Positions 6,201 through 47,986 of a stretch of DNA of 64,000 bases are shown here, in pieces. The translations under genes were made by a program, and so were the position numbers. The notes beneath the pieces were generated by a model. That model was given only the letters and a program-made list of their open reading frames with translations. It ran no database searches and had not been told where the DNA came from. Each line of letters starts with the position of its first letter. Positions within the stretch are counted from its first letter, which is position 1. This DNA comes from Phallusia mammillata. Its lineage: Eukaryota. Where the stretch lies: NCBI GenBank assembly GCA_965637545.1, contig OZ281500.1, forward strand, positions 12,772,001 to 12,836,000. Reading direction: 5' to 3'.

Positions 6201-9200
6201 TTTATATATTTTTTAGTTTGTGTGTCGAACCCAATTAGTTGCCCTACTAGCCCCCTAAAATGGGTCAGTTTTTTAAAACGTTAAATAGGACATACTTCAA
6301 ACAATATCTGGAGTGAATTTAATTTTATAGTTTGTATTCTACATAGTATTATTATTTAAGCCCAGTGCCGATCACTGTGTTTTACCTTACAACACCCGAC
6401 TTTCTCATGGTTATCTCTTGAATTGCATTATTTTCAACTTTGCATGTGTGGGGACCCATAAGTTTTTGCCTGCAGAAACGACTAAAGTTATAAAAGACGA
6501 TGGCTAATATGGGACCCAATACAAAATAAGCGTAGGAAATATATTTATGTTTTAAAATAGGTTATAGTGTATATGCAAGGGCAATATGTGCTAAGCCACC
6601 CTTCTAGTTTATACTGACATTTAATTTGCAATGAGTTTATTAGATTAACCAAGCATGTTGTTGAGCAGTCTTTTTAACGTTGCAAATCTTGTTAAAAACA
6701 GAGTATTCATGGTTTCATAACACCAACAGCAACACAGATTTAGACAATCAACTGTTTGAGGAGTTTTCTAAAAAGAAAACATCTAAGTTACACAATAAAA
6801 TGCAGACCATAAGACAAAGATTACCATCACACAAAATACAAAAGGTAAAAACCATTTAAATTTGTTGCTAAAGTTTGGTTCGGAAGAAGTGCTTTAAAGT
6901 GTACATTCATATGCGATAGATATAAAACCTAAAGTTGCTCCATAAATTACGGGACCCCAAACCGATAAAATTAAAAAAAAGGGCATGGTACATGACATAG
7001 GCGTAGAGTGTTTAAAAATATATATATGGGGTGCGACTTTTTATCATTGGCGCCGATAATAAACGCTGTAATACATAAGCAGTATTTGTACTCATATGTG
7101 ACCAAATACTGATACCTTCTACGGGGTTTAGCCTGTAGTTTTTATCACATTAAGGTCCAAAGCAGTTGCTAACTTTTCTTTTTTAGGTATTGCTTATTCA
7201 AGTTATAAAGCTTTGGTTTAAAGAAATAATACAATCCTTGCTTTTTATCAATTTGTCTTTGCAAAAAATGATATTTCTGTTAAAAATTTGCATGTACCTG
7301 GTGTAGGGCACCCATTCGTTTCTGCTTGCAGAAACAAAAACATTGTTAAAGGCCGTGTCAAGTAAGCGATCTAATTAAAATTACATTTGCAAGTATGGCA
7401 AGTAATTTTTCTAGTTTTGTATGTGATTTGGATAAATGTTTGCTGAATTTACTGACTTATCTTTACAGGAACTGATAGACCTGATCAACTCCAATCAAAT
7501 TGTAGTTATTAGTGGAGAGACTGGGTGTGGGAAAACTACTCAGGTAAAATTAAGTTTAAATCAGCTAAAGATCTTTCTTTTATGTACTTATATGGACTTT
7601 TTGTCACCACCACCTATCAAATTGCCATCTCTACATGTTATCTGTGACATAACTACATGCGTCTGAGATTCCCCTTTCTGCTAAGTGCTTAAATAATCCT
7701 GGTTTCAAGTTTAGTTAACAACCTGCTCTAATGATGAAAACAGTCATTGTTAAAATGTCTGCACTAAAATATGTTTTACAAAAAATCAACTCACAGCAAG
7801 TTTTAGAATAAATAGTTTGTGCTTAGATTCCCCAGTACATCCTTGATGATGCGATTTATCGTGGTGTTGGTTCTTCATGTAAAGTTGTGTGCACACAACC
7901 AAGAAGAATTTCAGCTGTGTCAGTAAGTCTGAGAATTTGGTTATATTGCACATAAACATTTAAGTTAAAATCATCGTAGTATGTTCTCTGTTGATTGTGG
8001 TGTAATGTCACAACATATTTGATCAGAACAGCTGATCCTTACAAATGACAGTAGTAACATATTTGAAAATTGATGTATCTTAGCTGACTATTTCAGCACA
8101 CGTCAGTCTGTGTATTGCTTATTACAAACCACTGTGGATAACGATTTCACCCAATATATTTGAATAAGGACTGGTGATGCCTTATTTAAATCGATATCCA
8201 CAGTGGTTTGTAATACATGTTGAGTGTGCTAAAATTGTCAGCTACTATATGCCAATATATGTAACTGGAATCCTCTGTTGAGCATCTATAGAACAGGACA
8301 ATCCTGTATTAGAACATCTTTATGTTCGAAAATAGTGCCTTAACCATTTTTTATGCCGAATAATTTGTTTACCAACTTTAAAAAAAATAGGTTGCTGAAA
8401 GGGTTGCAAAGGAGCGAGATGAGAGGTGTGGTGAAGGAAACAGTTGTGGATACCAAATTCGATTGCAAAATCGCCTGCCACGACAAAATGGCTCTATTCT
8501 CTATTGTACTACAGGGATACTGGTACAGGTATGTTTCTTACTCCTATTGAAAATAGTGGTTGAGATATTATTAAACTAATGTTGTGCACATTCACTTCAG
8601 ACTTTATAATTACATTTGATGGTTTTTAGTGGCTTCGTTCTGATCCAAACTTGTCACAAGTTAGCCATGTTATTTTGGATGAAATCCATGAAAGAGATTT
8701 ATTATCAGACATTTTGATTACCATCATTAAAGAAATTGCTACCACACGGTAATGCCTTAATTGTTTTTATTTAATTTAACCTAGGCACCAGGGAAATTAA
8801 TTCTGTGCATTTATAAACAAACTTGTTTCAGGAAAGACATCAAAATTATTCTGATGAGTGCTACTCTAAATGCAAATCTTTTTGCTTCATACTTCAATGG
8901 CTGCCCAACAGTTAATATTCCTGGTTTTACTTTTCCTGTAGAGGAATATAGATTGGAGGACACCATGGAAATGATAAGGTTTCTGCAGTATAACACAAAT
9001 CAAGATGTTATCTAAATAAATGTGAATGCCTAAAAGGCTGGTTCAAAATAGTGCTGTGGTTATTAAAATAGTTAAATAGGTGTGACATAGATTGGACTAT
9101 ATTTTTGTTTAGATATCAGCCCACTGATGCGGCATACGATCAGTTTTCTAGATTGATGTCAAATAAACGAGATTGGAGAGAAAGAAGGATTGGTCGAGAA

Positions 9201-12200
9201 GAACGCCAGGCACTACAAGAGGATCGTGAAAATTATGTTAATGAACTGTGGGAATACAATGATGAGCTTCGCAAAACGTATGTTGTTTCTTTCTACGATT
9301 TAAATTTGAAAAACATTGTGAGATTTCACCACCTTTACATATTGGTTGTGTGCCTATCTTATTACTGGCAATACATGTACACATGTTTGTGCATATTCTG
9401 TTCCAATTTTGTGGCAGTTTTTATGAGCTATAAAACAAAAAAATTTATGCAGATACTCTGAAGAATTGAGTGAAGCAATATGCATAATGGATGCATTTTT
9501 GCAAAAAAATATTGATACAACACTGATAGTTTCACTTATAAAACATCTGGTACAAAATCCCCTCTCAGATGATGATGCTGCAGGTGGTGCCATGCTTGTA
9601 TTTCTCCCGGGTTGGGAAGATATTAAAAAACTGAATGAGATGATTACAAAAGACACAGCATTTTTTAAACCACGTAAGTAGTTTGTGTTTTTTTCACTTT
9701 TAAACAGTTTGTAACCCTTTTTTAAGCTTCTATGTGGTTTGGTCCTTCTGCAATTTGTTTTGATGTAAAAAAAAATATTTGAAAATTTTAAATAAGGTTG
9801 TTTGCAGCTACATATGCAATAGATTTGTTTCTGCAGAGACAGGGTGCTCTTCTTACTGTACTAATATTAACATTTCTCTTTTTGGCTGCATAATGACAGT
9901 ACTGATGTTGAATCATTGTCAAAGTTCCAAAAACTATATGTGATAAAAAAAATGGCTCAGCTTGGCCTATCCTTGCCATTCAGAACAATGTTAATGAAAC
10001 AGCATTTTAATTTTAACAGAATGAAAAACAAAAACTGTTTACATAATATGCCTCACTCTTTTACCATTGTGTAACTAGTGTGACAATTAAACCCGTGACA
10101 TAGACAAAGCATTGTTGCTAGTTGAAATAGCTTTGGATAATTTTCTTACCTGCCTTGATTATTGATAATTGCAGACAAATATAGAATAATTCCACTGCAT
10201 TCTATGATGCCCACAACAAATCAACAAGAAGTTTTTGAGCGGCCTCCAAATGGAGTCACTAAAATTGTTATTGCCACAAATATTGCAGAAACAAGGTTGT
10301 AGTTTCAGTTTTTTTAGTATTTGCTAGCAGGGCATTGGACTTGTACATTATTTGGCCTATTTTCAAGTCGTTTAACTTTGCACAAGGCAAAGTCTGACAC
10401 TTATTGATTTTGATAAATTTGTCTTTTATGAAATAAAAACAACAGATTTGCTACAGATGTGTGCACAAAAATTGAACTAAATGAAACCAGGCTTAAACTT
10501 GTTCTGCAAAACTAGCAAAACTAGGGTAAAAATTCTGTCCAATGTCCAATGCCTTATTTGCTAGCACTTAGAGTAGTACTTTCATCAATAAAAACTTGGT
10601 TTACACTTGCTGAACATTTGAATGATGTTGTTTTTGAAGTAGTACCTCAGATTTTTTGAGTTAGATTTTACCTATTTTTAAGATCCCTTGTTTTTAAATT
10701 TGTAGCATCACCATTGATGACATTGTGTATGTAATTGACTGTGGAAAATCAAAAATGAACAATTTTAATTACTCAAAAGATCTAAACACCCTTGGTGCAA
10801 ATTGGTTGACAAAAGCAAATGCAAGACAAAGACGTGGAAGAGCTGGAAGGTATGTATTTGTAAGTATACATGTACACATGTGCATGTGTGCTTTTCCACT
10901 TTCTGTTGTAGAGTTGTTTCTGTCTGTTTTTTTTACTCATTTTAAAACTTTTACAACATGTAGCTGAGATCAAAACATACATGCAGTTAAAGTAAAATAG
11001 CTGTTTATGTGATGGAAATTTGTTGAACTAAATAAAAACTCACACAGATGACAGTAGAAGTCAAGGGTGTTTCAACTGTTTGTTTAACCCAAAAGTAAAA
11101 TGAGAAATAAGTCATGCTAATTTGTAGTCTAAATTTTGGCTTTAGCCCCAGGAGATGTTATGGCCTACTTAAAATGGGACCATTTATGAAAATAGGTATG
11201 TAGAGGGTCATTGTAGTATTTGCCTTCAAACTACAGTATCTTCTACACTAACTTCTGGTTTTGACATGTATGGTACCTATCAAAACATACATAACAACTT
11301 AGAATTCATGGAAGCCATTGGTTACATGACATAGTGTTTATAAAGCTGTGCAGGCTTTTGGTAAATTTTAAATCACAACATGATTCTTTTTATTTGAATG
11401 TTCATTTTTTGTGTTGTGATATTTTATAAAATTAATTTTTAAGTACTTTAATAGATTTGTTAGTAACACAATAAAAAAGTGTACAATTAAATTGTATCAT
11501 CACAAATCCCATCTGTTAAAAGGTGGCATTTCTATCACTTCATGGTAACAGTTTTCTATTTCTTTCAAACTTCATCACTGCAATAAACGGAGTTTGTTGC
11601 ATTGATTTAGAGTACAAGCTGGCTACTGCTTTCACCTGTACACTAAGTTGCAAGAGGAAAAGTTAAGTGAGTTTATGCAACCAGAAATTTTGCGAACACC
11701 ACTTGATCAAACCTGCCTTCAAATAAAGGTATAATTTTGAAAATAAAATGCAAATTTAGGAAAAACCAAAATGCAGACCATGTGCGGCAATTGCTTTATT
11801 TTTATGCTCACTATATTGCTGTGAAAAATCCTTTGGTTTGCAGATTTTACAACTTGGTGGTTTGCATGAATTTCTGGAAAGGGTAATGGAGGCCCCTGCT
11901 AAAGAATCTATTGAATTGTCAATACAAAAACTTACAGCCCTTGGAGCCTTGGACCACAATGAAAACCTGACTCCTTTGGGATACCATCTTGCCAAGTTGC
12001 CTGTACCTCCTCAGATTGGTTAGTATCTAATAGGGATGCCAAAATTGCAAATGTTCTGTTTGGTCGAGCACGCTCGGTGCATTATGACGTCACAAAAAAT
12101 CCCCTTTCTACCTTTTAGCTCTACAAGGCATCTTACGTCACCAGCGGTGTATTAAGCTGTTACAGGCCTCAGAAGTACACGTTTTTCCACAATCTAATAC

Positions 12201-14587
12201 ATTTGAAAAATCATTTGTTTTTTTTCACAGACACCTTTTCGAACACTAGTTACCTATGTTGGCAGGGCATGAATATGCAAATTTAATGCTCGGGTCACTT
12301 TGTGCAACTGCTCGGCCGAGCACCGAGCATCAAAAATAGCGATGCTCGGTAGCGAGTACTCGGGTTCTGGTTAGGCTCGGCACATCCCTAGTATCTAATA
12401 AGACTTAAAACTGAATCTAAAATAATGGCTTACTAAATAAAATGAATCAACTTGTTTAAAAAGTTTTAGGAAAAGTCTGTTAAAGATGAAAATGTTCTTT
12501 CAACAGGAAAGATGTTGCTGATGGGAAGCATGTTTCATTGTCTTGAACCTATTTTAACAGTGGCTGCCTGCTTAAGCTTTAAACAACCTTTTGTTTTCCC
12601 ACTGGTATGTCGACCTGGACACCTGCATAAGCTTATCAAAACATTAGACGTTTTGCAGAGAATCTATTAATTTGTATGTGCACATTTTAGATACTTTAAT
12701 AAGTAAATGTTTCCATTTACATTGGTCAATTTAGCTAATGTTTCAGCCGTTTTCTTGTGACCTTGATGTGATTTTTATAAATAAGATTTAAATTCTTTGG
12801 TACATAAACTTTAACTCTACCATATAACAAGTTGCCACATAACACATATATGGTACTAGGGTAAGGAAAAGGCAGCAGATGCAAGAAGAAAGGCTTTGGC
12901 TGGTCCACATAATAGTGACCATCTAATGCTTGTTGAAGCTTATAGAGGTTGGCAAGAAGCTACAAAGCGTGGTTCAGCTGGTGACTACTGTTGGAGAAAT
13001 TTTATGTCTGGATCCATTTTGAATGCAAGTTAATTAGCTTCTGTTCAGGATTTTTTGTTAATGATTGATCTTTTTGAATTATGAGGAATGTGGTAAAAAT
13101 TAAAAACTCCACCGTCAAGCTGTTACAAAGTCTATACAACTTTTAATCGTGCAAAGTTTTAGAGAGGCGAAATGACCTTTATATGTAAACACTGGTACAT
13201 CATGTTTCTGTGGACAGCGTATACTTGAAAACTGGCACTTTTGATTTATGTTTTTTATTATTTCTCCAGATGATAAAAGACATGCGCAGACAGTTTACTG
13301 AGTACCTTCAAGACACTGGCTTTTTTCTACCTGGATCTGTAAAGCTTATGAACGAGCATTCCAATAAACCAGAGGTCTGCAAAAACTTCAGATTTGTAAA
13401 TTGGCAGCCTCTTGTTTTGTTGAACTTAAAATTTTTACAGTGTTGAGAAAACCATTTAACATCAAGCCGATTGAGCGGATAAAATGAAACGTTGTTTTCA
13501 TGTTGTTTAAGATTGTTAAAGCAGTGGTATGTTCCGGTCTTTACCCCAATGTTGCGAAAATGTTCAAAAAGCAGCCGCGTCGTCCTCCTAAAATCAGCTC
13601 ACAACGGGAACGAAATCTTTCTATTCACCCCAAATCTGTCAACAGCGAAAAACCAAGCGACAACTTTCGGGAACTGTGGTTGTGTTATTACGAAAAAGTA
13701 CAAAGCACGCAGGTACAAAAAAATTGCTTCGTTATTTTTAATTTACGGTTTTGTTGTTTTGTTTTGGAATTACTTTTTTAAACTGGTGAGTTGCAAAACT
13801 AAGGACAGTCCAGAGTGCTGGATTCAGTGGCCTGTCGTAACTCATCATGTGACCTTCTCTTAAAGAAGGCTGACAAAAATAGGATGGAAATCCGACGTTT
13901 TACTTGTTCGTATCGTATTTTGAGCCTAATCTGTCCTTAAGGTTTTATCCTGTGCTTCTACAGATTAATTTATATGACACAAGCGAAATTTCTCCATTTC
14001 CCATGCTGTTCTTTGGTGGGGACATAAACACTTTTTGCAATGATGAAGGCGAAAACATGATTTCTGTGGATGAATGGATTCAATTCCGAGCGAAACCTGA
14101 AGTTGCCTCCACAGTACTGGTAAGCTGAGTTTCACATTTACGTGGCCAACAGACACGAACTCGTACATTAAGGTTTCAAGCTCGGTACTGTTAATGGATT
14201 TAACTTTAATACTTTTTCACTTTATATAAGCTGATCTACCACAAAACAAGCTGCAACGCACCAGTGTTTTAGGAAAATAGTCTACGTCGTACATCATTAA
14301 ACCGTGGTTTGGTGTCGCCGCATAAAAATAAAACTCCACTTTCCTTTTGCTTCATCGTCTCATGCTTGGAAATTTAGCTGTTTGATAATCGATATTCCTC
14401 AACCGTGGTTAGGTGCGTGAAGTATTTGCTTTACTATGTATTTATGCTCGGGTTTGTTTTACAGGAACTCAGAGATCAACTCGATAAAATACTTGCCAAG
14501 AAAATCAAGTTTCCTTTTCGGTCATTAGAAGAAGCCGATTTTGCCGTTGTTCGAACTATAGTTGATCTTTTGTCCAAAAAGTCGTAG
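3272..14587 (+). CDS. DHX36: DEAH-box G-quadruplex/RNA helicase DHX36 (RHAU), multi-exon
   Basis: ATG 3272 (MSRRGRYR|). Exon 2 carries the DHX36-specific motif (RRGRDIGMFYAQK). Spliced exons give SGETGCGKTTQ, CTQPRRISAVS, DEIHER, MSAT, LVFLPGW, IATNIAETSITIDD and QRRGRAGR, plus HA2/OB-fold segments ([39 protein letters not shown]). Stop at 14587. Confidence 0.93.
5419..6608 (+). mobile_element. Non-autonomous Helitron/Helentron-like element with internal tandem repeats (copy 1, DHX36 intron)
   Basis: Starts atgggtcccc, then a T-rich microsatellite and a 158-bp direct tandem repeat (5509/5667). Subterminal inverted gggaccca near 6512; 3' hairpin aaggg...ccctt followed by CTAG. Homologous copy at 34918-35958. 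Confidence 0.6.
8081..8244. mobile_element. Small fold-back/MITE-like palindromic element in a DHX36 intron
   Basis: Outer IR tagctgactatttcagcacac / gtgtgctaaaattgtcagcta; inner IR ttacaaaccactgtggata / tatccacagtggtttgtaa. Confidence 0.6.
12031..12390. mobile_element. hAT (Ac-type) MITE
   Basis: TIR TAGGGATG...CATCCCTA; exact 8-bp TSD GTATCTAA. Second copy at 46072-46444. Confidence 0.9.
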
Positions 14588-14847: not shown

Positions 14848-17800
14848 TTATTCGTGATCGTGCAGAGGATTTCTACACGGGTTTCCACATAAAAGAGCAA
14901 GCATTTTTCTGGAGAAGTTGACATCGAGTGCGTCGAAACCTCCCTCGACCGCATCACGCAGCACATATTGATCTTCACCAGCCATTACCTCGATTTCAGT
15001 CATGTTCAGATTTCCTTGCGGGGGTTTCACAGGAAGGACATAGAACTAAAGACAAAATTGTAATTTATTAATAGCATAACGAGATGCCCTCGGACGCAGT
15101 TGTTTGCGTAATACGTACAAACTGAATAACGCATAAAAGTTCTATGAGAGGCGATAAAAACGAGGTCAACGTTTCCAAAACATTTTAACGTTGCTTTAAC
15201 ATAAAAAAAAAACTTTACATGATAAAACAGCTTTGAATATAAACTGTGAAATATTTTACACCTGAGGAACCCACGTTAGTGGGCTTTCCTAAACTGTCCA
15301 TAATCCAAACACATCGCTGCTTCAACCAGGACACTAATTCCTGAAGCCAGTTGAAAACGGTTGCAACCTCTGTCAGAAAACCCAAATCTAATATTACAAA
15401 CACTAAGAACGAAGCACAGGTACAACGAATCATTCTTGACTTTTTTTCGTAATAGGCTACGTAGACGTTGACCTCCAATGACCTACAGCTGTAGCCAAAC
15501 GAGTAGTTTTCTATTAAGGACCTTATGGTCCGATTTAAGTGAAGAGCGTAGATGTGTTTTGTATCCAAAAGAGCTTTTACGTATCCGAAGTATCGTTTAT
15601 TGTTTAATTTCTGTTGGGTAAAGTAATACAATATGTAACCCTATGTCGGAACAAAAAAATCGGATGTTTATTTGATACGTTTTATTGAAACAGCTGTATA
15701 GCACTTAAATTCTTCATATAACTTGGCAGCAAAATAGCAACAAATGTAACGATTATCACTCTCCATGGCGTAATGCAACTGTCTAAAAACTTGACCGCCT
15801 AACTTACAGTGAAAAAATTGCCCAATGCAATTAATACTAAATGTGTTTACGGTCTTACCAGAGCTTGGTCGCGAATGCGTTTTGAAGGTGCCACAATATC
15901 GTCCTGTGAAGCTCCATCAGTGATGAGCAGAACAACATCATTCGCAATAGGTCGGTTTCCTATCCTAAGTAGTGTGTTGGCAACGTAATTTAGAGCATTT
16001 CCAGTCCTTGTGCCTGTAAACGATACGTATAATGGCACCAATATAGTATTTATACTGTGATAAATAGCCTAGATGCCCACGCCCTCGGCGATGGAATCTA
16101 AAATATAAAAAGTTTGCGTCTGAGCTCCTCACCGCTTCCATCGTACGGTATCTCATCAAACTTCTCCAGAACCGCCTGTGTACTGTCTGGGAAGGAATTA
16201 AGCAAAATCTAAAAGTACAAGATTGTCAAACACAATTCAAATAAGAATTCAAGAAAGCATTACCTGAGTGTCCGTATCCACCTCTCTGTTGTATCGGATT
16301 ACTGCAAATTGACTTGAGTCTGGTCTTACCACGAATTCACTGAAAACCCAAAGGTATGCCACTTAATTCTATCTGCTACAAAGAAGCCGTGTTTTTACGA
16401 GTATTGTGGTAAATCGCTATTGACTCCAAACGACAATAAAGCCAACTAAAAATTGTTCGTGTGGGAATCAGGGAGTCGAACCGGAACTGAACCCGAACCC
16501 GCGAACCGGTTTGAGCGGTTAATTTCATTAAACCCGAACCGAACCCGAACCGCTAATCACGATTTTCTAAAAACCCGAACCGGAGTTGAACCCCATATTT
16601 TGTTTGGCGGCGGACCCGAACCGGAACCGAACCAGTAAAAAATGCAGTCTGTTTTATATTTTATGATATTTTTTTCAAAACAGCGCACTGAAGAATACGC
16701 GAGATAACACTTATAGGGCGTGTCAAAAATAACAGTGCACGGTCAAATTTCTTTAAAAAAATTCTTCTGGAGTTTAAAACGGCTAGGTAGATGATGATGG
16801 GTAAAATTAAATTACAACAAATGAAAATTTGAACCGGTTTAAAAACCGCAAACCGGTTCGAACCGGATAATTTGTCCAAACCGGAACAAAACCCGAACCC
16901 GAAAATATACATTTTAAAAAACCTGAACCGAACCCAAACCCTTAAAAACAAAACGAAGTGAACCCGAACCGAACCTGAACCCATATGACAAGGGGTTCGA
17001 CTCCCTGGTGGGAATATACATATCCACTTTCAAATAAAGTACTCGCCTGAGAAAGCTTCGAACAAACTTCTTCATTTTCATCCAGTTTTCCGCACGCACG
17101 GATGAAGAAGAATCGAGAACGACCACAAAATCCATGATGGCATATGGTGGACACGGTACTATGGGGAAACATGTCAAAATATAATACCTGCAATTTATGC
17201 CCATCACATGTTTAATTATAAAACTTACGCCCACAACAACCAGCATTCGTCCATTCTTCATTCCTTTGACAACTGGCGGTCCTAAAACTCTTCGGGTAGA
17301 TTTGATATTCTTCCTTGCATTGCAACTGACAATTCGATCCCACATAGTTTTCATTGGTGCACTTGTATGTGCCGTGATTTACGCGTAGCTTTGTGCATTG
17401 TAGCGCTGTAGATTAAAGAGGTTCGTCTGCAACCGTTCTACTTGAACAGTAGATACATATAAGTATATTTATTTAAACAATATACAACTCCGTCTATAGT
17501 AGACAATATAGCAAATATAAAAGCTGCATGTGTTCCGCGGGTGCGCTAGTAGATTTCGGCCTATCCCTCAAGATTTAAAAGTTTTTCCACATACTTATTT
17601 GATGTCATGGTTCAACTGCATAAATGTAAATGTATGTAAAATGTTAATATGTCTTACGTGCCAAACAATACTCCTTAACTTTAATACAGTTAAGAAATGA
17701 AGGCTATTTTCGTGCACAATCTTTGTAATGCGTTCTTGTTTGTGACAAACAAAATTGGCGTCGGATCATTCGCATTCAATGTAATTCTGCAAATCTATAG

Positions 17801-20800
17801 CTGAGATTAATCTTGAACTGTAAGTCGGACTGATCGTCGTGTTCCAACTGGGTTCGGGCTAGGGCTCTACCAAATAAAACGGGTGTGATTTGGGCCTGAC
17901 TTTACACGTGGCCACATTATTATCGTTCACCGCGGTATTTTGGACATCTTTCGGGCATCAGTTTTAAAATGAACGGGTTAAAGGGCTGGGTTATGGACAA
18001 AATTTCAACTCGCTTACAACCCAGTGTGAATGCCTTTCCGAGCAGAAATATTTAGTTATTACCTACAGATTTCGTTTTTTTATTCTTCAAAATCTGCATT
18101 TTGGTTTCTACAAATATATTCAGCTTCGACTGCGATTAGCGTATAGAAAATACTATAGGATTGTTTTAAATTTCTTTATAGCAGTCACTGTGATTCTTAA
18201 CCTTTTTTAACTTTGCGAACCCCTTTTGAAAGTTTTGTAACACGGCGACCCCTTTACAAACACACGTAGGAAGGTTCACTATTGGAATGTGTTATCGGAA
18301 TTACAACAAAAACCTTTCCCGCCGTTGCAACCGTCACACCATACATGTATTGTTACGTCATAACTGCCGACCTTGTGTGTGTCCTACTTTTACAGTTTCC
18401 TTCGTTCCACACGTGTGGGTGTGGTGTGGTTAGTCTTTCAGCAGTATTTAAGTTGTGCTGTATGTATTTAATTTCGCTGTATTGGACAAGTTTATGTTAT
18501 ATAAGTTAGATTGTTTGGACTGTTTGGTAATTGTGACGTTTTTTGGTTATATTTGGTTTAGGACTTTAGGTGGTAAAAAATCCGTTTTAAATCACTGAAA
18601 ATAAAGTGCATCTGAAACCGGCTATCTTATTCTGCCAGTCAAGAGACTGTAAGGTAGAATTAGCGAGAAGGCTTGAATTCTACAATTGGTATAAATTATT
18701 TGGTATCAAAGGTTACTGTAAGATTTTGATTTTTTGCTGTGCAACATGCCCTTTTCGTGTTTTTTATGTCAAGTCTCGGGAAAAGTTTTTATGATACGGA
18801 TCAACTCATCCTGAGTTGGATTGCGTCTTCGCGGTCCCCTCAAAGTGCTTGGCAACCCTATTGGGGGTCGCGACCCCATGTTGAGAAACACTCGTTTGAA
18901 ACGTTTGGGGTTTATACAAATGGGTTTTATGCTTATGATGTTTTTATTTATTCCTACGTTTGCATTCTGGTTGTGGTCTTGTCCACAAGCCGTAAGGATC
19001 AGAGTCCAAATCTTCAATGCACTGCAATCGCTGACCTCCATGAAGACGATAACCTTCTTCACAACCAAATCTGAACGGAAATTCAAATTAACTCAGCATT
19101 TAAATCCAAAGTTAAACATTTATCGTTATGGTCCAAACTTGGAAAATATAGAAAATACCTAACTAGATACTAGGGGAGCTGTTAATAGTTAAACTGCCAT
19201 AATCATAACCAACGCAACGTAGAGAGATCGACAACATTAGGTGGATTGTCTACTACATGCATGCAACTAGCCCAGGGGTGGCCAACCCGCGGCTCGCGAG
19301 CCGCATGCGGCTCTTCGCCTGGTTTTATGCGGCTCTTAAGTTGTTGTCGAAGTTTGGGGCCATTGTGTATATTTGAGTTAGTAATGCTTCAATCCGTTGT
19401 TTTTCGGGTTATGACGATTTATATTTTATCGGCAGTTTGTCTTGGGTTTGAATTAAGCGATTGTTGGTGGTGAATGCATTAATGACGTCGCAATGTATTT
19501 AGTTTCACCACTTTGCACTTGGGACACATGCGCGTTAGGTGTTTGGGGCCCGTGCGCGTTAGTTGAAAATACCGCAAGTTTTTTCAGCAGGGAAAATCTT
19601 TTAAATAAACAATTTTTGTCAAGTTAGCCTTCAAATTGGCAGAGAAAAAAGATTACACCAGAAATGAATCTCACCGCACGTTATTTATAAAATGAGAAAA
19701 AATGGGGATTTTAATTCATCTGTTTTTCTTTGATATATTCGTTGAAATGAGGGTTTTGTGTGAGAGACAGTGTTTGCATGGACCATTTATTGTTGAAAAT
19801 GACTGGCCCGTGGTCTGTACAAGTCAAATTGTGTCATTATTATGTTGGTGTGCGACATTTAGAATAGATCTGGCTAAGCACAGGTCTCTGTGTGTGAGGA
19901 AGGGACGATCCATTTAACAAATGTGCTTATGTGTATAATGTGGCTCATTGTGGTAACACAATAAAAAATATGGCTCTTAGGCTTTGACCGGTTGGCCACC
20001 TCTGAACTAGCCCATTTAAGTTCAACTTGTCTTTACTTTCGCGTGGTTCTTGCGGTTAATTTTATGGTATAGCCTATATGATGGTCCATGTTGCACAGAG
20101 AAACTGTAAGTGTTCGCTTTAGTTTGCCATTGTCAGTAAACGAAAGGAGGAAACCATAGTTAACAGGTCGTGACCATCAAAGAAATGGCACTTAATAAAA
20201 GCATTCCATTAAAAATGTGTTTAATATTCTCGTCATTATTACACTGATCAGAAACTTACTCGCACACACTCAGCCAGTTTATGTCATCTGAGCAGCGTTT
20301 CCACCCGAATTGAGGAGTAAGCATGGCTGGTGGGCACGTGATTCGTTGACATTTCGGCACATTTCCACTCCATCTCCCATAAGCATCTGAGCAAATAAAT
20401 TTATTTTTTGTGTGACGAATAAATGTGTGTATTAAACAGCAGAAATGTTTGAAGGAGGGCATGGGCCCTGGTTGAGAACCACTGGTATAGCCATTTTCTG
20501 TTTGTCACATTGTTTGTTTTAATCGTTTCAGATGGTCACCGGTCGGCAGATTATGACATCGCTTGACAAATATGTTTGCACACTTCTTGCTTGGAAATAT
20601 AATAAAGATATATAATTTCTTATATTTTATAAAACACTCCATAATCGAGTGTTATTTGCACATTTTGACATATATGTTAAAATATGAATCTGAAGTTATA
20701 TTCCATGGGATAGATGTTTTCGGAGTTCTAAAACTAGTGATTTTTTAACAAAATGTGTGCCAGTTTCGAGAAAGTTAACAGAAGGTCTTTCGCAAAAAAA

Positions 20801-21985
20801 TGACTCACCACAAGTCAGGATTCGGTTGCCAATAAGACTGTATACTCGTGGGCAGCTGAACGTACAAACACTCATGGGAAGAGATCCACTAGTGCAGGAC
20901 ATGTAGCCCCCCTCCGGCGCTTCGAGTGGTGGACATATGTCTGTTGCAAAAATAAACACCGACAACGTTATGTGTGTGGGAGGGTTAGACGGTTTCCACA
21001 TAAATGTCATTGTATTTACCACCCCTCTCACAATCCAGTACGCCAAAATTACAGTTTTCCGTGGCACAACAACATCGACACACTGATGACGGTGGTTTGC
21101 CGTTGCACTGGATTTGACTCCCGCCTTTCGACCAGGCTTCGTGCCGATTCTGTTGTGGCAGCGTCACAATATTTTTAGAAAAGTTTATGTGCTTAATATG
21201 GTCGCCTTTATTTACGAATCTTTGATTAAACAATGCGATTGTTTACTTTCGAAACCAAGCATTGATGTCCCAGTGTGTTGTAGAATCACTGAAAACAATC
21301 AGTGGATTCACAATTTAAACGGAAATTTAATAACTTATAATGTGTTGTCTGCTTTAGTTAATAATTACACAAATATTTGTGTGGGAATTTCAAACTACTT
21401 AAGATAAAGTGGTTCATACCTGAACGAAGTTGTCTCCGCAAGCACTTGGACGTTTGCACGACTTTTGTATCATTTTTTCGGGTCCCCAACCTCCTTGCCG
21501 CAACTCTATGTGACACATTGTCTGCGGAATTCAAGGAATCCCATATTATTCGGGAAAATACTTTACGTTTGAAAGTCAAATGCTTCTTTACTAATGATGC
21601 AAAACTCCCCTTTGCTGAATACCTATTTCTAATTTGACGAAGACTGGCGCCCAAGCTTTAATAATGTTGGTTAGGAAACTGAAAGTTCTTTATTTAATTT
21701 GCCACAACTTTCTTAAAAGCACGGTTAATGGAGTGTAAATATGTCGTAATATTTGACGATTTTCACCTCAGATTCTGGACACAACGTCAGGTTTCCCCGC
21801 GCCTGGCATTCTTCCTCGGACTTTACGTTGTCACAAGTCCAGCAGGAAATTCCTAAAATAAAAACGTTTACCGCTGTTTCAGGTGCTTTTAACAAAACAC
21901 CACGCTAATAACAACTATTCTTACCTGACGCCAACTTGTTTGTTAGCAACCATAAAACTAAAATAAATTGTGCAAGCCTAATCAT
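14848..21985 (-). CDS. Secreted protein: signal peptide + Ly6/uPAR-like Cys-rich domain + 3 CCP (sushi) + vWA (paralog A)
   Basis: ATG 21985 [21 protein letters not shown]; then ISCWTC...[13 protein letters not shown]. CCPs: [12 protein letters not shown]...[15 protein letters not shown]...WTRPQPEC and [10 protein letters not shown]...WTNAGCC. vWA: [12 protein letters not shown]...GTRTGNAL...[12 protein letters not shown] with an intact DxSxS/T/D MIDAS. Stop at 14848. All exons join in frame, with one GC-AG intron. Confidence 0.85.
16469..17007. mobile_element. hAT MITE with (GAACC[C/G])n subterminal arrays
   Basis: TIR CAGGGAGTCGAACC...GGTTCGACTCCCTG; exact 8-bp TSD GTGGGAAT. Lies in an intron of paralog A. 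Confidence 0.9.
19273..20004. mobile_element. hAT (Buster/Charlie-type) MITE
   Basis: TIR CAGGGGTGGCCAACC / GGTTGGCCACCTCTG; exact TSD AACTAGCC. Confidence 0.9.
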
Positions 21986-22708
21986 TTTTGCAAAACTGTA
22001 AACGAAACCAAAATTATTTTCGTTTGGCATGTATTTATCATTCTTTTTTAGTGTTGTCCAAGAAATGTTTTCCGCTCAACTATTGGGTTTTCGTTCAGTT
22101 TAAATCAATAATCTATCTAAGTCTGCTTTGAAACTGTCTTAATCCCGCACAGTGATCGTACAGCCATTTCGTTGCAAATTGTCTACACAATGGGTCGCAT
22201 GCGTTCAGGTATATAAGTGATGAAATACTGAGATAAGTGGTTTCTTATCATCCAATCTTTGCTTAACTTAACCTTTTTCAAGATTTCCGAACTTTTCGCC
22301 ACCGAACGTGCAACCGCTAATCTTCACCTTAGGTGATCCAACTGGTATAACAACTTCGACAAACATACATAAATGAACGTTTAAGCTTTGTTAATTATTG
22401 TATATTGACACAACGAAAAACTGGGATTCACAGAGATTTGTCTTAAACCGCACGTTTTTCTACATGGTTTTAAACGGCTCAAATTCCCATTAGTGTATGG
22501 CTGGATTCAGCAAACATGGAACGACAAGAGGATAAGAAAAATGTCGTCTTACTCTCTTCTGACAGCAATTGATATTATAATGTTTATATGTGACAACCAC
22601 AAGCCTTGGTGATATCATCTAAATTCAAGGCCTTGTTTATTCATGTTAGGTTCGTGTGGATTTGGCGGTAGGTAATGTTTATTTATGATTAATCAACCGT
22701 CAGGCAGT

Positions 22709-25700
22709 TTAACGGTCGTGATCATGGAACGGGTTTTTGCAGGGATTGAGACAAAGGATTTCAGTGATCTTTTCTGCAAATAGGTCATTCAAGGCCTCAA
22801 AACCTCCCGTCAGCGCATCTTCGAGAACATTCTCTGGTTGACCGGCAATGGCGTTAATTTGATCAAGATCCAACCTTCCGTTTGGTGGCATTACAGGAAC
22901 AACGTACACCTAAACACATGGGTTTGCCATTTAAAAAGAGGCTTGGGACTCGTTTGAACCAAATTTTGGTACAGCCTCATGTCACGCATCCCATTGATGT
23001 TTTTACTTCCAATTTTTTAAAATTGCTTTGTCGCGCCTTTCGCCAGATTCTTAAAAATGATTTCAGTCAACAATTTATCGCCTGGAGTCAGATCAGTATA
23101 GTTCATGACTGAGGTCACCACTAAAATCAAACTCTACTCTCGCTTGACAGTATAGCAGTTGGAAATTAGTCATTGGGGTCAAAGACCACGAAACATTGAC
23201 AACAGTTTGGGTAAATATGCACTTTAAGTGTAAAGTTTTTCGCTCACCAAGACACGTTCATCGCGCAATCTCTGCGCTGGAATTGTGACGTCATCTTGAG
23301 ACCTTCCATCAGTGATCAGTAAAACGACGTCCTTTGCGTCTGCTCTGTTACCTCTTTTTAGCATAACATCGACCGTGTAGTTTAACGCCTTCCCTGTCTG
23401 TGTCCCTGTGTGGTCAAAAGTAAGTGTGGTAGAAACAGCAATTAGCACAAACACAAAATTACTTTATTAATTACCTAAGCGAATTTTGAAAAAAACGTTA
23501 AAACGAGAACCACCTGTCAAACCCATTTTACATACGGCCGAAATCTATGTCATTGTTGTATTTAGTCTAAATCGAATTGACATCAAACTAAACCACTTAC
23601 CGTTGCCATTGTAATCGATAAGATCAAAAGCATCAAAAAAATCTTCTTTGCTTTCCGGATATTCGTCCAGAAAGATCTACAAAGTAAGATATCTTTTGTA
23701 ATTGCAATTCTGACCTTATGGTCATGTGTAAAAATACAGACCTGTGTTCTTGTGTCAACCTCGCGATTGTACCTGAAACCACCGTATCGACTGGCATCAT
23801 TTCTCACAATAAAATCTCTATGAAACAAAAAAAAACATAAATTACACAACGTCCTGTCAGTTTCTTTGCGTTTCAAAATATTATCAAATCATATTTAGAC
23901 CAGACAGTCAAAACCTCTAAATGTTCATAAACACCTCCTTAAAAAGTTCAAACTATTCTGTGGAGTTTAGCGATTGCGTCAGCTATTTACATTCAATGTA
24001 TTGCTATTTTACTTTAAGAAACTTTTGACGAATTGTTTAGTGATGACCCAGTTATCTGCACCGACGGAAGACGACGAATCTAGGATGATAATGAAATCCA
24101 TGATTGCAAAAGGCGGACAGGGCACTAAAAGCAAAAAAAAATTAATGTTTCAAACTATTGGTAATTGCATTTGCCAGACTTACATGTGCAGCATGGCCAA
24201 CTCACGTCCCATTGTTCGTTACTTTGACAAGTTGTTATTGGTACCTGAGGATATAAAACGTATCCATCAGCCTCGTCACACTGGAATGAGCATTGTGAAC
24301 CGACATAGTTCTCGTCGGAGCAAGTAACGAATCCATGGTTGAACACGTCTTGGGTAGGACACTGCAACGCTTTACAAAACAAAAACATTTTTGTGTGTTT
24401 CGCGCTCGTGTAAACAACAAGTTTGGTGCTTACGTTTGCATACGGGTGGCGCCCTGCTCCACAAACCATACTTTCTACGACGAAATTCGAGACACGTAAT
24501 TGTCTCTGCACCATGCAAGCGATAACCTTCATCACACGAAAACCTAATGGAAAGATATTAACTTGGCAGCAGGAATGCAAAGACTACGGAGATAAACATG
24601 GCTGATTATGGGTAGCGGTTATGTAGGTTGTACAAGTGGGTATCCAAATCTCAATAGAAACGCGTCATGTTATTGCGACCAGAACCATCCTCCCAATTTT
24701 ACAAACACACCATTGACATATATTGCAATGTAGCTAGTTTAGTTGTATGAAGGTTATAATCAGTTTTTGAAAGCATTCATTTTGATATACGTAGCGATTG
24801 TTTACGCGGTCGAATTCAATACACTTACACTTAACGTAGTATTTAATTAAAATGGATCACAGAAGCTTACGTGCAGCGACTTCCCAAATCCACTCCTAGC
24901 GTACATTCAACAGAACCAAATTTGATTGTCTCCGGTCGATGCAGACATGAAACAGGGAGACATTGCGGTTTATCGTGACTCCACTTGCCGAAAATACCTG
25001 CGTTGTTAACAACAAACAATCGGTGATGCAGATTTGTGGTTGAGAATCGCGTGTTCCACTCGCAGCCAAGTGTCTCGCCACATTTATAGCAAAGTTACCA
25101 ACCACATGACATAGATGTAGAGCCGACCAGATTGTAGCGCCTGTTGCAACCAAATTCACAAGAGGAGAATATATTGTTTCCGCGAGTGCACTTCATCCAT
25201 CCATTCTCAAGTCGTGTCAAAGTACCGCAGTGGGCAACCGAAGCTGACAAAAACGTGCAATTTTAGCGGTTTACTTATGTTCTCTTGACACGAGCTGTCA
25301 CAAACATGCAAAATACCAGATTAAGATCGGACTATAGATACGTTAAATACAGCTTCACGTCTTCGAAAAAGTCTTACTTTCCTTGTCACATGTCAACGTT
25401 TCGTGATTACACAAGTCAGTTCCACAACAACATCGACAGACTGAAGATGGGGCATAAGTATTGCACTGAATCATGTCGCCCTTAAATGCCCAAGCCGGTT
25501 TCAAATTCTGAAAAATAAAGGCAAATATCGTTGTAGTGGAACAAATGTTTTAAAGTTAAGACTTGTTTTGATTCGTAAGGTTTGTTTCATCACATCGAAA
25601 CAAAACTAATTTTGAACTGTGTTTCATTGACTTGTTTTGCTTAACGTTTTTTTATCGAACCTTTGAGAGAAGTAAGTTGAACGATTTCTGTCGGCCAAAG

Positions 25701-26465
25701 TATTGATTGATATTTGTGTCGGGATTTTTCCCTCATATTTTTCTCCGTCTGTGTTAAAATTTTGCTCTGCGTTTTTCTATGCTCCTATGCATTATCGTGT
25801 CTTAACATAGCTGCGAATTCTCAAAATTAATTCAACTTTGTTGATTATACATCAGTTGACACCGAAAAACGAAACGCCCTTTCTGCAGTGCCGGAGGGAA
25901 AATTGCTTTATCCGAGGGTACCAAACTGCAACATCTTGAACGTTTGTAAAACTTACTTTTGTGAAAATGCTAATAATTATTACGTTATGTTTCAGAAAGA
26001 CCAACACCATTTTTTAAAACAAGACTATGTTTCATGCTTTTATGAAACACAGTTTACCTGAAAATGGTTTGAACCACACGCAGTTACGGTCTTGCACGAT
26101 TTGTCGAGCATTGGTTCTTCGCCCCAACCACCACGACGAACTTGAATTTGACACATATCCTGCACAAAATACGCAAACATATAATGCTGTTACCAGTGCT
26201 TCCCCGTAAATAAATGTGTCGAGATCATGACATAAACCACACCTGTTCAGGACCGCATACTGTTGCTCGGCCGACTTTAACACATTCTCTTTCACCCAGT
26301 GCATTCGCACATTCCCAACAGATAATGCCTGAAATATAACCAAAAATCAGCCACTGGATCTACTCACACCACGACAAAAACAAGATAACCGAAAACCTGA
26401 AAGTTAAAATTTACAGTAAGCCCGTGATAAAAGTGGGAAACGTAACTAACGACCGTATCTGTCAT
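22709..26465 (-). CDS. Secreted protein: Ly6/uPAR-like + 3 CCP + vWA (paralog B; 5' end unresolved)
   Basis: [15 protein letters not shown]...[13 protein letters not shown]; three CCPs; v[19 protein letters not shown]...GTQTGKAL...[11 protein letters not shown]; C-terminus [14 protein letters not shown]. Exon phases match paralog A, plus a 20-nt micro-exon at 25275-25294. The start codon is only a candidate. Confidence 0.82.
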
Positions 26466-29400
26466 TTTTTGCTGGATAGGCATTCCATTAAAAGTCTCCA
26501 CGCAAGCGTGACGATATTGAGAAATACCCGATCGTTTCGTTTAGTTATTCTACATATATAAAGTAGGCCCGAATGTTCAAAATTTAGATCAGGATTCGTT
26601 TGCTGTTTTGTATATTGTGGATAACTTAAAGGTAAATTTGAAAATATAACCAGGTGAGGCAAATTGGGTGTTGCACACCTGCGCTTGTTTTGGGTGTCAC
26701 CACAGACGGGCGCTTAAAAGCATTACACCTTCGCCCTTTAAGCCAATCGGCGCCCAGTTATGGGATTACTTGGTCTGATAAGCGTTGTCAGGAATGTTAC
26801 CAAACAGTTTTTTTTTTGCATTTTTGTCCATTTTGTGGAGTTTTACTTATACTCAATCAATTTATTTTGCTTTGTTTATAACTGATCGGTTTATTTTTAC
26901 TTCGTATAATAAGTACACTACAAACAAACATTTTTAAGTATATTACTACAGCAACCAACCTGATACAGCTTTATATTGAAGCAATGAACAAATCAAAACT
27001 GCGAAAGTTCTCATGATTCTTTTTCCAATAGTATTTTTTTCTGTCGCTTCAAGTCGCTTTAACGGAGTGCAGGATCAGAGTGACACGACGGATGACAGCA
27101 ACCGTCATTTATAACCTCAAGAGACTTGCTTCACTGCGTTCTAAACATAGCTGTTAAAAAACAATACTAGCAAAAATGCTGTGGCATACACCCACACGAT
27201 CTATTTGGCTCCATACCCATTTGAAAATTAATCTTTACTCCTGGCCGCTCGGTACCATGAGATCAAGTAATGCTCACTTGCGGGTTAAACCGTAATTCGT
27301 ACCTTGTTTTTCTGGTTCGGCAAATTAAATTCTGATTTCAAAAAATCTTACCACAAGCGTTTGACTGATCTTCAGACCTACCTGAGCGGACAAAAAACAA
27401 CACACAAATGCCGCTGCCTCATTGTAACCTATTATTTCAGCCTTTGGAATTTTTTTCGAGAGTCAAGTGTGAAATCCCCATTTTAGACATAAGCGAAAGA
27501 ACAAGAAAGCGGTTGGTTGTGCCGTCATGGATGTCGCGTTATACATACTTTAGATGTCACGGTGTGGCTCAACTTACAGACAGTACTGTTTCTCCATTTA
27601 CCATATGACACGAAACTTGTTAGTGCAAAATTCCAATGTGCATGGTACGTTTTTTTTTAGCTTAATAAACATTATTTTTAAAATTGATGGCATGACTGTT
27701 ACTGTGACCACTAACCATACATTGGATCCAACCGAAAAAAAGTCACGTTCGTGTTGTGCACAAGATTCAGGTTATTACATACGTCACAGGTATGCGAACA
27801 ATTTTGCGTTTTGTACTCGCAAATTTTTGAATTTCTTTTTCAAAACTTGCGTACATTGTTTTTTTACCTCAACGCACGTTTTAGTGTAAATGCGCTCAAA
27901 TCATGCATGATTTGAAGACCCGTTACCTTTTAAGGTGTTTATGTCCGAAATGTTGTCAAGACTCGCCAAAGTTTAGACGTCATAGGCATGTCAGTACGTC
28001 TTAGGTGCAAGTATTTGGCAAACGTTTTTCCCTCTACTGGCAGGTTTCGTGACAGTAACGTAAAAAAATGTCTTTACATTTTCGTTATGTCGGTGTATTT
28101 AATTGATTGTTACAAAACACGATTTTTGGCATATGCACCGAAGAGCACAAATATTTTTCGAGGCACTCAAGCAGGTTACATTTGCTTCGTCTCAGACTCG
28201 GGCTGATTGTTTGTTGTCTGCTCATGTTTTTGCAATGCGCATACTTTGGGTTTACAGTTTTTATCGGCACATTTTATTACATTATTAAGGTCGACTGTGG
28301 AAAAATACAGCAAACAACTGTCACACATTAGTCAGGCATTTTTCATTTTTAAAATGAATTGTCACTTATAACAAGGAAAAGCACTGTTAGTCTACAATGA
28401 AGCATATAGGCTGAAGATTATTTTACACCGCAAACGTAAAAGCATGGAGCCATTAATTAAATATTAAGCTGTTTCGACCCACAAGATGAGATAAGGTCAA
28501 TGATAAGACCCAAAAGGTATAGGACGAAACAGTATGCATGCACTGTTTACAGCTTGTATGTACTTAAAAAAAAACTAAAAAAAAAACTTAAAATTACATT
28601 CTTACTTTTCGGAGTAACCAATTTCTAAACACAAGTCCAGTGTAAAATTCACATAGAGGGCCTTTCAATCCAACTGATTGTCAAGCAAAACAGGCAATGT
28701 ATGTTTTACGCGTAAATGCGGCTTGAACGGCGCGAAATCGACCAAGAACTCGAACTTTGAGGAGTGTTTTACAGCATATAAAATTTTATTTGTCGCAAAA
28801 TTAACACACAACTTCACTGACCAAGAATTAGGGCTATAATAAAACAACATTCATAAAAACTTAGCCCTACACTACGAAATCACATTTTCTGGGTTAGTTG
28901 GTTCGACAGCCCCCATTGGCCCGATCCAGCCCACCAAGGCTCTTCTTTTACTATACTACACGTCAAATCTAAAAAAACTGCTTTGTCGAAACCAAACAAA
29001 ACTAGTGTTCAGGCGCCAAACTTCGTTGTGTCGAGAGTCGGGCCAACGTTGGTCAGGCATCTTGTGCTTTTGAAAAATGATTCTGAACTTGAAACTGAGT
29101 TAAATTTTACCATCAAAATCTAGGGTAAGCAAGGAAAAGTGGTTTCAACTTATACAAAAAGGATGCACAACAGACAATACCCTATATGCTCAAATAACGA
29201 CAAAGAAATTGTAACTTGTGATGCCCTACTACAAGCAAATAGCCATTCTAGTAACAATTGAAGACGTGCCGTGGCGACGCAATAATAACGTCATTTTGAC
29301 GATAAAGAAAAAGAACAACGCTCTGGTGTGATCATGTCAGTCAATTCTTCCTTGTTTCTGACACTCAAGCACTTTTTTTAGCACCACGACATATTCTGAG

Positions 29401-32797: not shown

Positions 32798-47986
<15,189 letters not shown>

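Follow-up and report, generated by a model that had tools for sequence, protein, structure and literature searches.

The stretch of DNA analysed here, called the window throughout, comprises 64,000 nucleotides of the Phallusia mammillata genome (assembly GCA_965637545.1, contig OZ281500.1, positions 12,772,001 to 12,836,000 of the forward strand; coordinates below count from its first letter). On its minus strand it carries two intact genes of 13 exons each, A and B, which are arranged head to tail with only ~0.7 kb between the stop codon of A and the ATG of B (Table 1). The products of both genes are fully accounted for by a signal peptide, an N-terminal LU or three-finger domain, three complement control protein (CCP, or sushi) domains and a C-terminal von Willebrand factor A (vWA) domain. 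Judged by their sequences, A and B are old tandem paralogs of a secreted family of the architecture LU-CCPn-vWA, which has so far been named only in tunicates. An earlier note, drawn up from the letters of the window alone, had described the pair as a complement factor B-like module without the protease. This description does not hold for the vWA domain, which by sequence is of the matrilin/collagen VI type and not of the factor B/C2 type.

Gene structure and transcription of the tandem pair

Exon models were built from the minus-strand stop-to-stop frames with bookkeeping of splice sites and phases, and searches were run exon by exon. The protein P0116, which equals the vWA domain of B, and the Ciona orthologue P0135 served as stand-ins for whole domains, and the exons of A and B were joined by local scripts only to check that the frame runs on and to look for exact substring matches. 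Both reading frames stay open across all 13 exons, all splice phases match between the two genes, and the lengths of corresponding exons are either equal or differ by whole codons (A/B in nucleotides, exons 2-7: 86/86, 102/102, 130/130, 141/132, 127/127 and 110/113; exons 8-13: 186/177, 112/112, 76/76, 76/76, 158/155 and 201/198). The earlier note had therefore rightly recognized two intact paralogs with matching exon phases. All introns are of the GT-AG type except for intron 9 of B (16340-17046), which is GC-AG with the donor GCGAGT. The true start of A most likely lies at 27014 rather than at 26465, where the earlier note had set its upper limit, because the exon 27014-26960 is hydrophobic and ends, as exon 1 of B does, with SG and a phase-1 donor. 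The maximum hydropathy over 10 amino acids is 2.57 for this exon compared to 0.94 for an alternative start at 26462. The exon is found ~550 bp outside the former limit and is followed by an intron of 631 bp.

Table 1. Coordinates of genes A and B and of their domain-encoding exons in the window, with the factor B gene of the same genome for comparison.
Feature	Coordinates	Strand	Remarks
Gene A, coding span	22709..27014	-	13 exons, 519 aa; exon model and RNA contigs
Gene A, exons 1-4	27014-26960, 26328-26243, 26159-26058, 25507-25378	-	
Gene A, exons 5-8	25243-25103, 24997-24871, 24543-24434, 24369-24184	-	
Gene A, exons 9-13	24124-24013, 23817-23742, 23676-23601, 23405-23248, 22909-22709 (including stop)	-	
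A exon 1, signal peptide	26960..27014	-	inferred; SG end and phase-1 GT donor, as B exon 1
A exons 2-4, LU/three-finger domain	25378..26328	-	14 family-invariant Cys and CCC-x4-CN motif
A exons 5-8, three six-Cys CCPs	24184..25243	-	Pfam Sushi; introns 5/6, 6/7 and 7/8 RNA-confirmed
A exons 9-13, vWA and Cys-x3-Cys tail	22709..24124	-	Pfam VWA, MIDAS; introns 9/10 and 12/13 RNA-confirmed
Gene B, coding span	14848..21985	-	13 exons, 514 aa; exon model and CAB3265960.1 match
Gene B, exons 1-4	21985-21925, 21852-21767, 21521-21420, 21149-21020	-	
Gene B, exons 5-8	20940-20809, 20386-20260, 19070-18958, 17405-17229	-	
Gene B, exons 9-13	17158-17047, 16339-16264, 16208-16133, 16013-15859, 15045-14848 (including stop)	-	
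B exon 1, signal peptide	21925..21985	-	hydropathy 2.41
B exons 2-4, LU/three-finger domain	21020..21852	-	conserved Cys present
B exons 5-8, three six-Cys CCPs	17229..20940	-	Pfam Sushi
B exons 9-13, vWA	14848..17158	-	Pfam VWA, MIDAS intact; exact P0116 match
Factor B gene, same genome	contig 8 (G000:C8:15009000-15028999)		located via WAP modules

Both genes are real and transcribed. For A, spliced contigs from RNA run X3 show the exact removal of introns 5/6, 6/7, 7/8, 9/10 and 12/13, with CT..AC ends that correspond to GT..AG on the minus strand, and a further X3 contig covering 22449-22906 extends the 3'-untranslated region to at least 22449, which is at least 260 nt beyond the stop codon. 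For B, the mRNA-derived GenBank protein CAB3265960.1 ("P-selectin-like [Phallusia mammillata]", 197 aa; this is P0116) is contained letter by letter in the translation of the spliced exons 9-13, and the match includes the Ser codon formed at the junction over the GC-AG intron 9 as well as the same C-terminus and stop. An 18-nt stretch that is present in opposite orientations at 23797-23814 and 26809-26826 matches an abundant contig of 1,252 nt (depth ~450; runs X2-X4); the depth spikes and loose ends at these two places are due to this match and are unrelated to the transcript of A.

The LU-CCPn-vWA family in tunicates

Close relatives of A and B over the full length are Ciona intestinalis LOC100186994 (511 aa), a Ciona "E-selectin-like" protein (519 aa) and "P/E-selectin-like" proteins of Clavelina (513-525 aa), and longer relatives with more sushi domains are found in Ciona (835-840 aa, seven sushi domains) and Styela clava (846 aa). 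Many unnamed matching sequences come from JGI/IMG, Logan and marine-catalogue sources. The named hits that follow next beyond tunicates, a clam collagen VI-like and a snail matrilin-like protein, match in the vWA domain only and with 26-27% identity. Exon for exon and in the same order, A and B can be aligned with P0135 of Ciona (54-55% identity) and with P0164 of Clavelina, at overall identities of 51-55%. P0135 is the product of LOC100186994 (XP_078492910.1, earlier XP_002124496.1 "P-selectin-like"), and P0164 is the "P-selectin-like" protein of Clavelina lepadiformis (XP_076807206.1/CAK8690957.1). Both are predicted proteins only, have lengths of 511-520 aa and share with A and B the architecture, the invariant cysteines and the metal ion-dependent adhesion site (MIDAS) of the vWA domain. 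While A and B form a tandem, LOC100186994 is solitary at its locus, and a comparison of the two loci revealed no conserved flanking genes. Elsewhere in Ciona a tandem cluster of sushi-VWA genes is present (AP043580.1:5466762-5497528; products of 201, 761 and 1887 aa).

Within the Phallusia genome, a search with the last exon alone yielded eight further loci, and in their flanks LU, CCPs and vWA follow each other as they do in A and B, the number of CCPs ranging from about two to at least 10. Moreover, a tandem array on contig 7 (G000:C7:11243000-11252999) consists of LU exons followed by vWA exons with zero CCPs; it has a period of 6,020 bp and at least eight copies between 11.24 and 11.29 Mb. 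Across the paralogs of this genome the CCP count thus runs from 0 to at least 10, and three CCPs are not a constant of the family. A representative search with exon 12 was dominated by giant multi-vWA proteins and was useful only for retrieving family members.

Between A and B the identity is 50% in the LU domain, 43% in the CCPs and 55% in the vWA domain, and the synonymous sites are saturated, so that dN/dS is not computable. The N-terminal and CCP regions had been called strongly diverged in the earlier note, and these values reduce that claim to a modest regional difference. No paper on the accessions or on the LU-CCP-vWA architecture was found in the literature, but the architecture is already contained in databases in the form of predicted "P/E-selectin-like" tunicate proteins. 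A vWA domain also occurs in the Oikopleura house protein oik35, an unverified candidate for membership in the LU-CCPn-vWA family.

Domain structure of the encoded proteins

The secreted architecture of three-finger domain, three CCPs and vWA that had been proposed before is borne out by the signal peptides, by the LU fold of a Ciona model and by Pfam matches to Sushi and VWA. Pfam gave no match with the single exons 2-4 of A and B, and in one Ciona paralog UPAR_LY6_2 was matched weakly and below threshold (E 0.012); the LU-only fragment P0152, used as a query, gave zero matches and was uninformative. In an alignment of 19 family members, the LU region shows 14 invariant cysteines and ends C-terminally with CRCCC-x4-CN, and A and B keep all of these cysteines. 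An AlphaFold model of the N-terminus of P0135 (pLDDT 78) matches LYPD6, LYPD6B, uPAR, C4.4A, TGF-beta receptor II, Lynx, PSCA and snake three-finger toxins with a probability of 1.00. The best fold matches are LYPD6 and LYPD6B (target-normalised TM-score up to 0.72, ~20% identity), and CD59 is not among the top 50. The three-finger assignment is right at the level of the predicted fold, as modelled on the Ciona orthologue rather than on A or B. With the LU domains of LYPD6, LYPD6B and uPAR the family shares the three-finger fold and the C-terminal CC-x4-CN motif, whereas it is only ~20% identical to them, has 14 cysteines, lacks a glycosylphosphatidylinositol (GPI) anchor and continues into CCPs and vWA. 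Neither A nor B contains a second hydrophobic segment, a membrane anchor or a GPI signal. The products should be soluble and secreted, because the signal peptide is their only hydrophobic segment and the C-terminus is hydrophilic.

Searched exon by exon, Pfam Sushi is found in exons 5, 7 and 8 of both genes. CCP1 and CCP2 are each split across two exons and CCP3 is encoded by a single exon, and six cysteines can be read directly from the sequence of each CCP. The CCPs of the full-length Ciona orthologue match CR1, CR2, Crry, factor H, MCP, DAF, beta2-GPI and E-selectin (5e-8) in the PDB. The CCPs of selectins have six cysteines, and it is this selectin-type likeness which accounts for the automatic "P/E-selectin-like" names. 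Six-cysteine CCPs whose number varies between paralogs are common to the family and to E-, P- and L-selectin; in contrast to selectins, A and B have no C-type lectin domain, no EGF domain, no transmembrane segment and no cytoplasmic tail.

Pfam VWA (PF00092) is found in exons 9 and 12 of A and B, with an E-value of 3e-28 for P0116 and of about 1e-27 to 1e-29 for full-length orthologues. The MIDAS is complete in both proteins (D-x-S-x-S, the Thr of GT.TG and the Asp of TDG), in agreement with the earlier note, and 24 of 24 family-invariant cysteines are kept in each of them. Four extra cysteines are conserved, two at the junction of CCP3 and vWA and two in the C-terminal Cys-x3-Cys tail, and these probably staple the ends of the vWA domain together, by analogy with the terminal disulfide of vWF A domains. 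No protease follows. In both genes the stop comes right after the vWA domain and its short Cys-x3-Cys tail, as had been stated before; the mRNA-derived P0116 ends at the same stop, the space downstream is occupied by the next gene, and no trypsin motif is present anywhere in the window.

The assignment of the vWA domain to the matrilin/collagen VI type is drawn from several comparisons. Among PDB chains, P0116 matches collagen VI a3 (5e-41), the mussel protein PTMP1 (2e-13), vWF-A3 (1e-8) and integrin a2 (6e-6), and also collagen VI a1 and MIC2. A profile of 33 CCP3-vWA units of the family likewise matches collagen VI a3 (1e-195), PTMP1 (4e-49), integrin a1 (1e-21), collagen VI a1/a2 and vWF A domains (2e-20). 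A hidden Markov model (HMM) of the family vWA gives 235 bits for P0116 and a sum of 195 bits for the five vWA exons of A; it reaches 108-139 bits on single vWA domains from fishes and molluscs that are matrilin-like or collagen XII/XIV/VI-like, compared to a sum of only 21 bits on the five vWA exons of the factor B of the same genome. Matrilins, collagens VI, XII and XIV and PTMP1 are the closest vWA relatives by sequence, and they share with the family a complete MIDAS and flanking cysteines. A and B differ from matrilins and collagens proper in that they have no collagen helix, no EGF domain and no coiled coil, and in that LU and CCPs are added. Furthermore, the vWA domain is spread over five exons in the family, whereas canonical collagen VI-like vWA domains in the same genome are single open frames.

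The neighbouring gene downstream of B is a convergent, DEAH-box helicase-like gene on the plus strand (~3500-14130; e.g., GETGCGKTTQ at ~7500), which ends ~700 bp from the stop of B. Intron 9 of B contains a repeat (~16400-17030; translation ...GVEPLVIW... and runs of GFGFGSG) that is also present within one intron at the contig 8 factor B locus and is probably a dispersed short repeat element. Further upstream of the pair, positions 38000-42000 form a block with a GC content of 0.47 against a background of ~0.35.

Proposed role and alternative readings

Taken as a whole, we read A and B as transcribed tandem paralogs of a tunicate LU-CCPn-vWA family with a vWA domain of the matrilin/collagen VI type and with a function as extracellular bridge or adhesion protein, and we hold this reading with moderate confidence. 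A role in bridging or adhesion is the most likely one by analogy with the single domains. The C-terminal vWA domain might dock on a ligand of the matrix or cell surface, either via its metal site or in the manner of the collagen-binding A domains of collagen VI, vWF-A3 and mussel PTMP1; such docking is proposed because the nearest relatives mediate matrix assembly or collagen binding and because the MIDAS is intact. LU domains typically have a protein partner at the cell surface, and the N-terminal LU domain would bind a second partner in the way known from uPAR, LYPD6 and TGF-beta receptors. The CCPs may serve as a stiff spacer of a length that differs between paralogs, as in selectins, and this role is suggested by their variable number. 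The earlier note had itself allowed for a convergent resemblance to factor B and for metal-dependent adhesion, and both fit the class of the vWA domain and the intact MIDAS.

Four points weigh against this reading. The bridging mechanism is drawn from domain precedent. In sequence searches of the PDB, it is to complement regulators (CR1, CR2, Crry, factor H, MCP and DAF) that the CCPs are most similar. When the CCP3-vWA model from the Ciona orthologue (pLDDT 93.6) is searched with Foldseek, factor B ranks 10th and C2 37th. These chains stand high in the list because they are co-linear with CCP3-vWA; the E-values of the vWA folds as a whole span only about one order of magnitude and do not separate vWA classes, and the identity is 15-17% for factor B compared to 21-27% for collagen VI and vWF. 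Finally, two of the four introns within the vWA domain coincide with introns of the factor B of the same genome in identical phases, namely a phase-1 intron in the Gly before the MIDAS Thr and a phase-0 intron before the [VI]YVV strand (in A 23601/23405 and 23248/22909), and a third is found at nearly the same place with a different phase. This comparison of introns is uncalibrated, since the other multi-exon vWA genes sampled in the genome are members of the family.

Among the alternatives, a secreted modulator of developmental signalling is possible and, in our assessment, unlikely. Such a protein would act in metamorphosis like Ci-sushi or would modulate a receptor such as LRP6 in the way of LYPD6. 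Ci-sushi (KH.C11.274, "P-selectin-like") is reported to be necessary for the apoptosis of tail regression in Ciona (PMC8495957; PMC13225635; both citing Chambon et al., 2007), and the Ciona members of the family carry the same automatic name. However, this name is given to many unrelated CCP proteins, and the membership of Ci-sushi in the family could not be established from the papers, supplements and chromosome records, which leaves it as an unverified lead. The LU domain is closest in fold to LYPD6 and LYPD6B, but this likeness does not go beyond the fold, with ~20% identity. Besides, many tandem copies per genome are unusual for a core signalling modulator.

Somewhat more doubtful is a diversifying recognition family, whose paralogs would offer different binding surfaces for self/non-self, gamete or microbe recognition. 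The family is large, lineage-restricted, arranged in tandem and distributed over several chromosomes, and its paralogs are strongly diverged (~50% identity). LU proteins such as Bouncer mediate species-specific fertilisation and provide a precedent among gametes. Against such a function, the duplication of A and B is an old one with synonymous sites saturated, there is no sign of recent diversification, and all structural cysteines and the MIDAS are conserved in both.

A link to complement appears quite improbable. A and B would then be relatives of factor B/C2 without the protease, or independent binders of C3b/iC3b (decoy, regulator or opsonin) that combine CCPs like those of the regulators of complement activation with a MIDAS-bearing vWA domain. 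Three CCPs directly N-terminal to a MIDAS-bearing vWA domain are indeed common to A, B and factor B/C2, and the CCP matches, the Foldseek list and the two shared introns described above speak on the same side. Precedents from general knowledge can be added. Integrin aM I domains, to which the family vWA is closer than it is to factor B, bind iC3b through their MIDAS, and one regulator of complement, CD59, has an LU domain. CD59 is, however, absent from the top 50 fold matches of the LU domain, and direct comparison with the factor B gene of the same genome argues against a close relationship. Its order is LDLa (by eye)-WAP-CCP-WAP-CCPx3, a linker of ~45 residues, vWA (five exons) and trypsin exons (TAAH, GDSGGP), and the CCPs have four cysteines and a single open frame each. 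In A and B, by contrast, each CCP contains six cysteines, introns divide CCP1 and CCP2, only ~12 residues lie between the CC pair of CCP3 and the first Asp of the MIDAS, an N-terminal LU domain is present, and serine protease and activation linker are missing. The low score of the family vWA profile on factor B points in the same direction, as does the variable number of CCPs in the family. In addition, three sequence searches of the PDB (P0116, full-length Ciona orthologue and family profile) gave no Bf/C2 chain among their 60 best hits, although the scores of factor B and C2 would add up because both proteins contain CCPs and vWA.

The idea that A and B are a factor B that lost its protease was rejected on the class of the vWA domain, the type of the CCPs, the missing linker and the variable CCP number. 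To judge from these differences, the order CCPx3-vWA in factor B and in A and B is most plausibly explained if widespread extracellular modules were shuffled independently. A more speculative version, to which we give only a slim chance, takes the two shared intron positions and phases as a trace of common descent: the family would be a protease-less sister lineage of factor B/C2 that arose from one ancestral CCP-vWA cassette, and its members would be soluble binders of C3 fragments that engage a cell receptor via LU in tunicate complement or non-self recognition. That A and B are non-functional copies or an annotation artefact can practically be dismissed in view of the open frames, the conserved splice sites, the spliced RNA of A, the mRNA-derived protein of B and orthologues in three ascidian orders, and nothing specific speaks for it except that exon 1 of A is inferred.

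For most specialists the finding is a modest one, as the sequences are already in databases. Excluding a truncated factor B nevertheless removes a tempting but wrong complement annotation together with the misleading name "selectin-like". What remains is a clearly delimited family that is expressed, amenable to experiments and represented in Ciona by a single-copy orthologue. Tunicates are the closest living relatives of vertebrates, and in this large family of secreted proteins they have combined three modules which vertebrates employ apart from each other, in immunity, adhesion and signalling.

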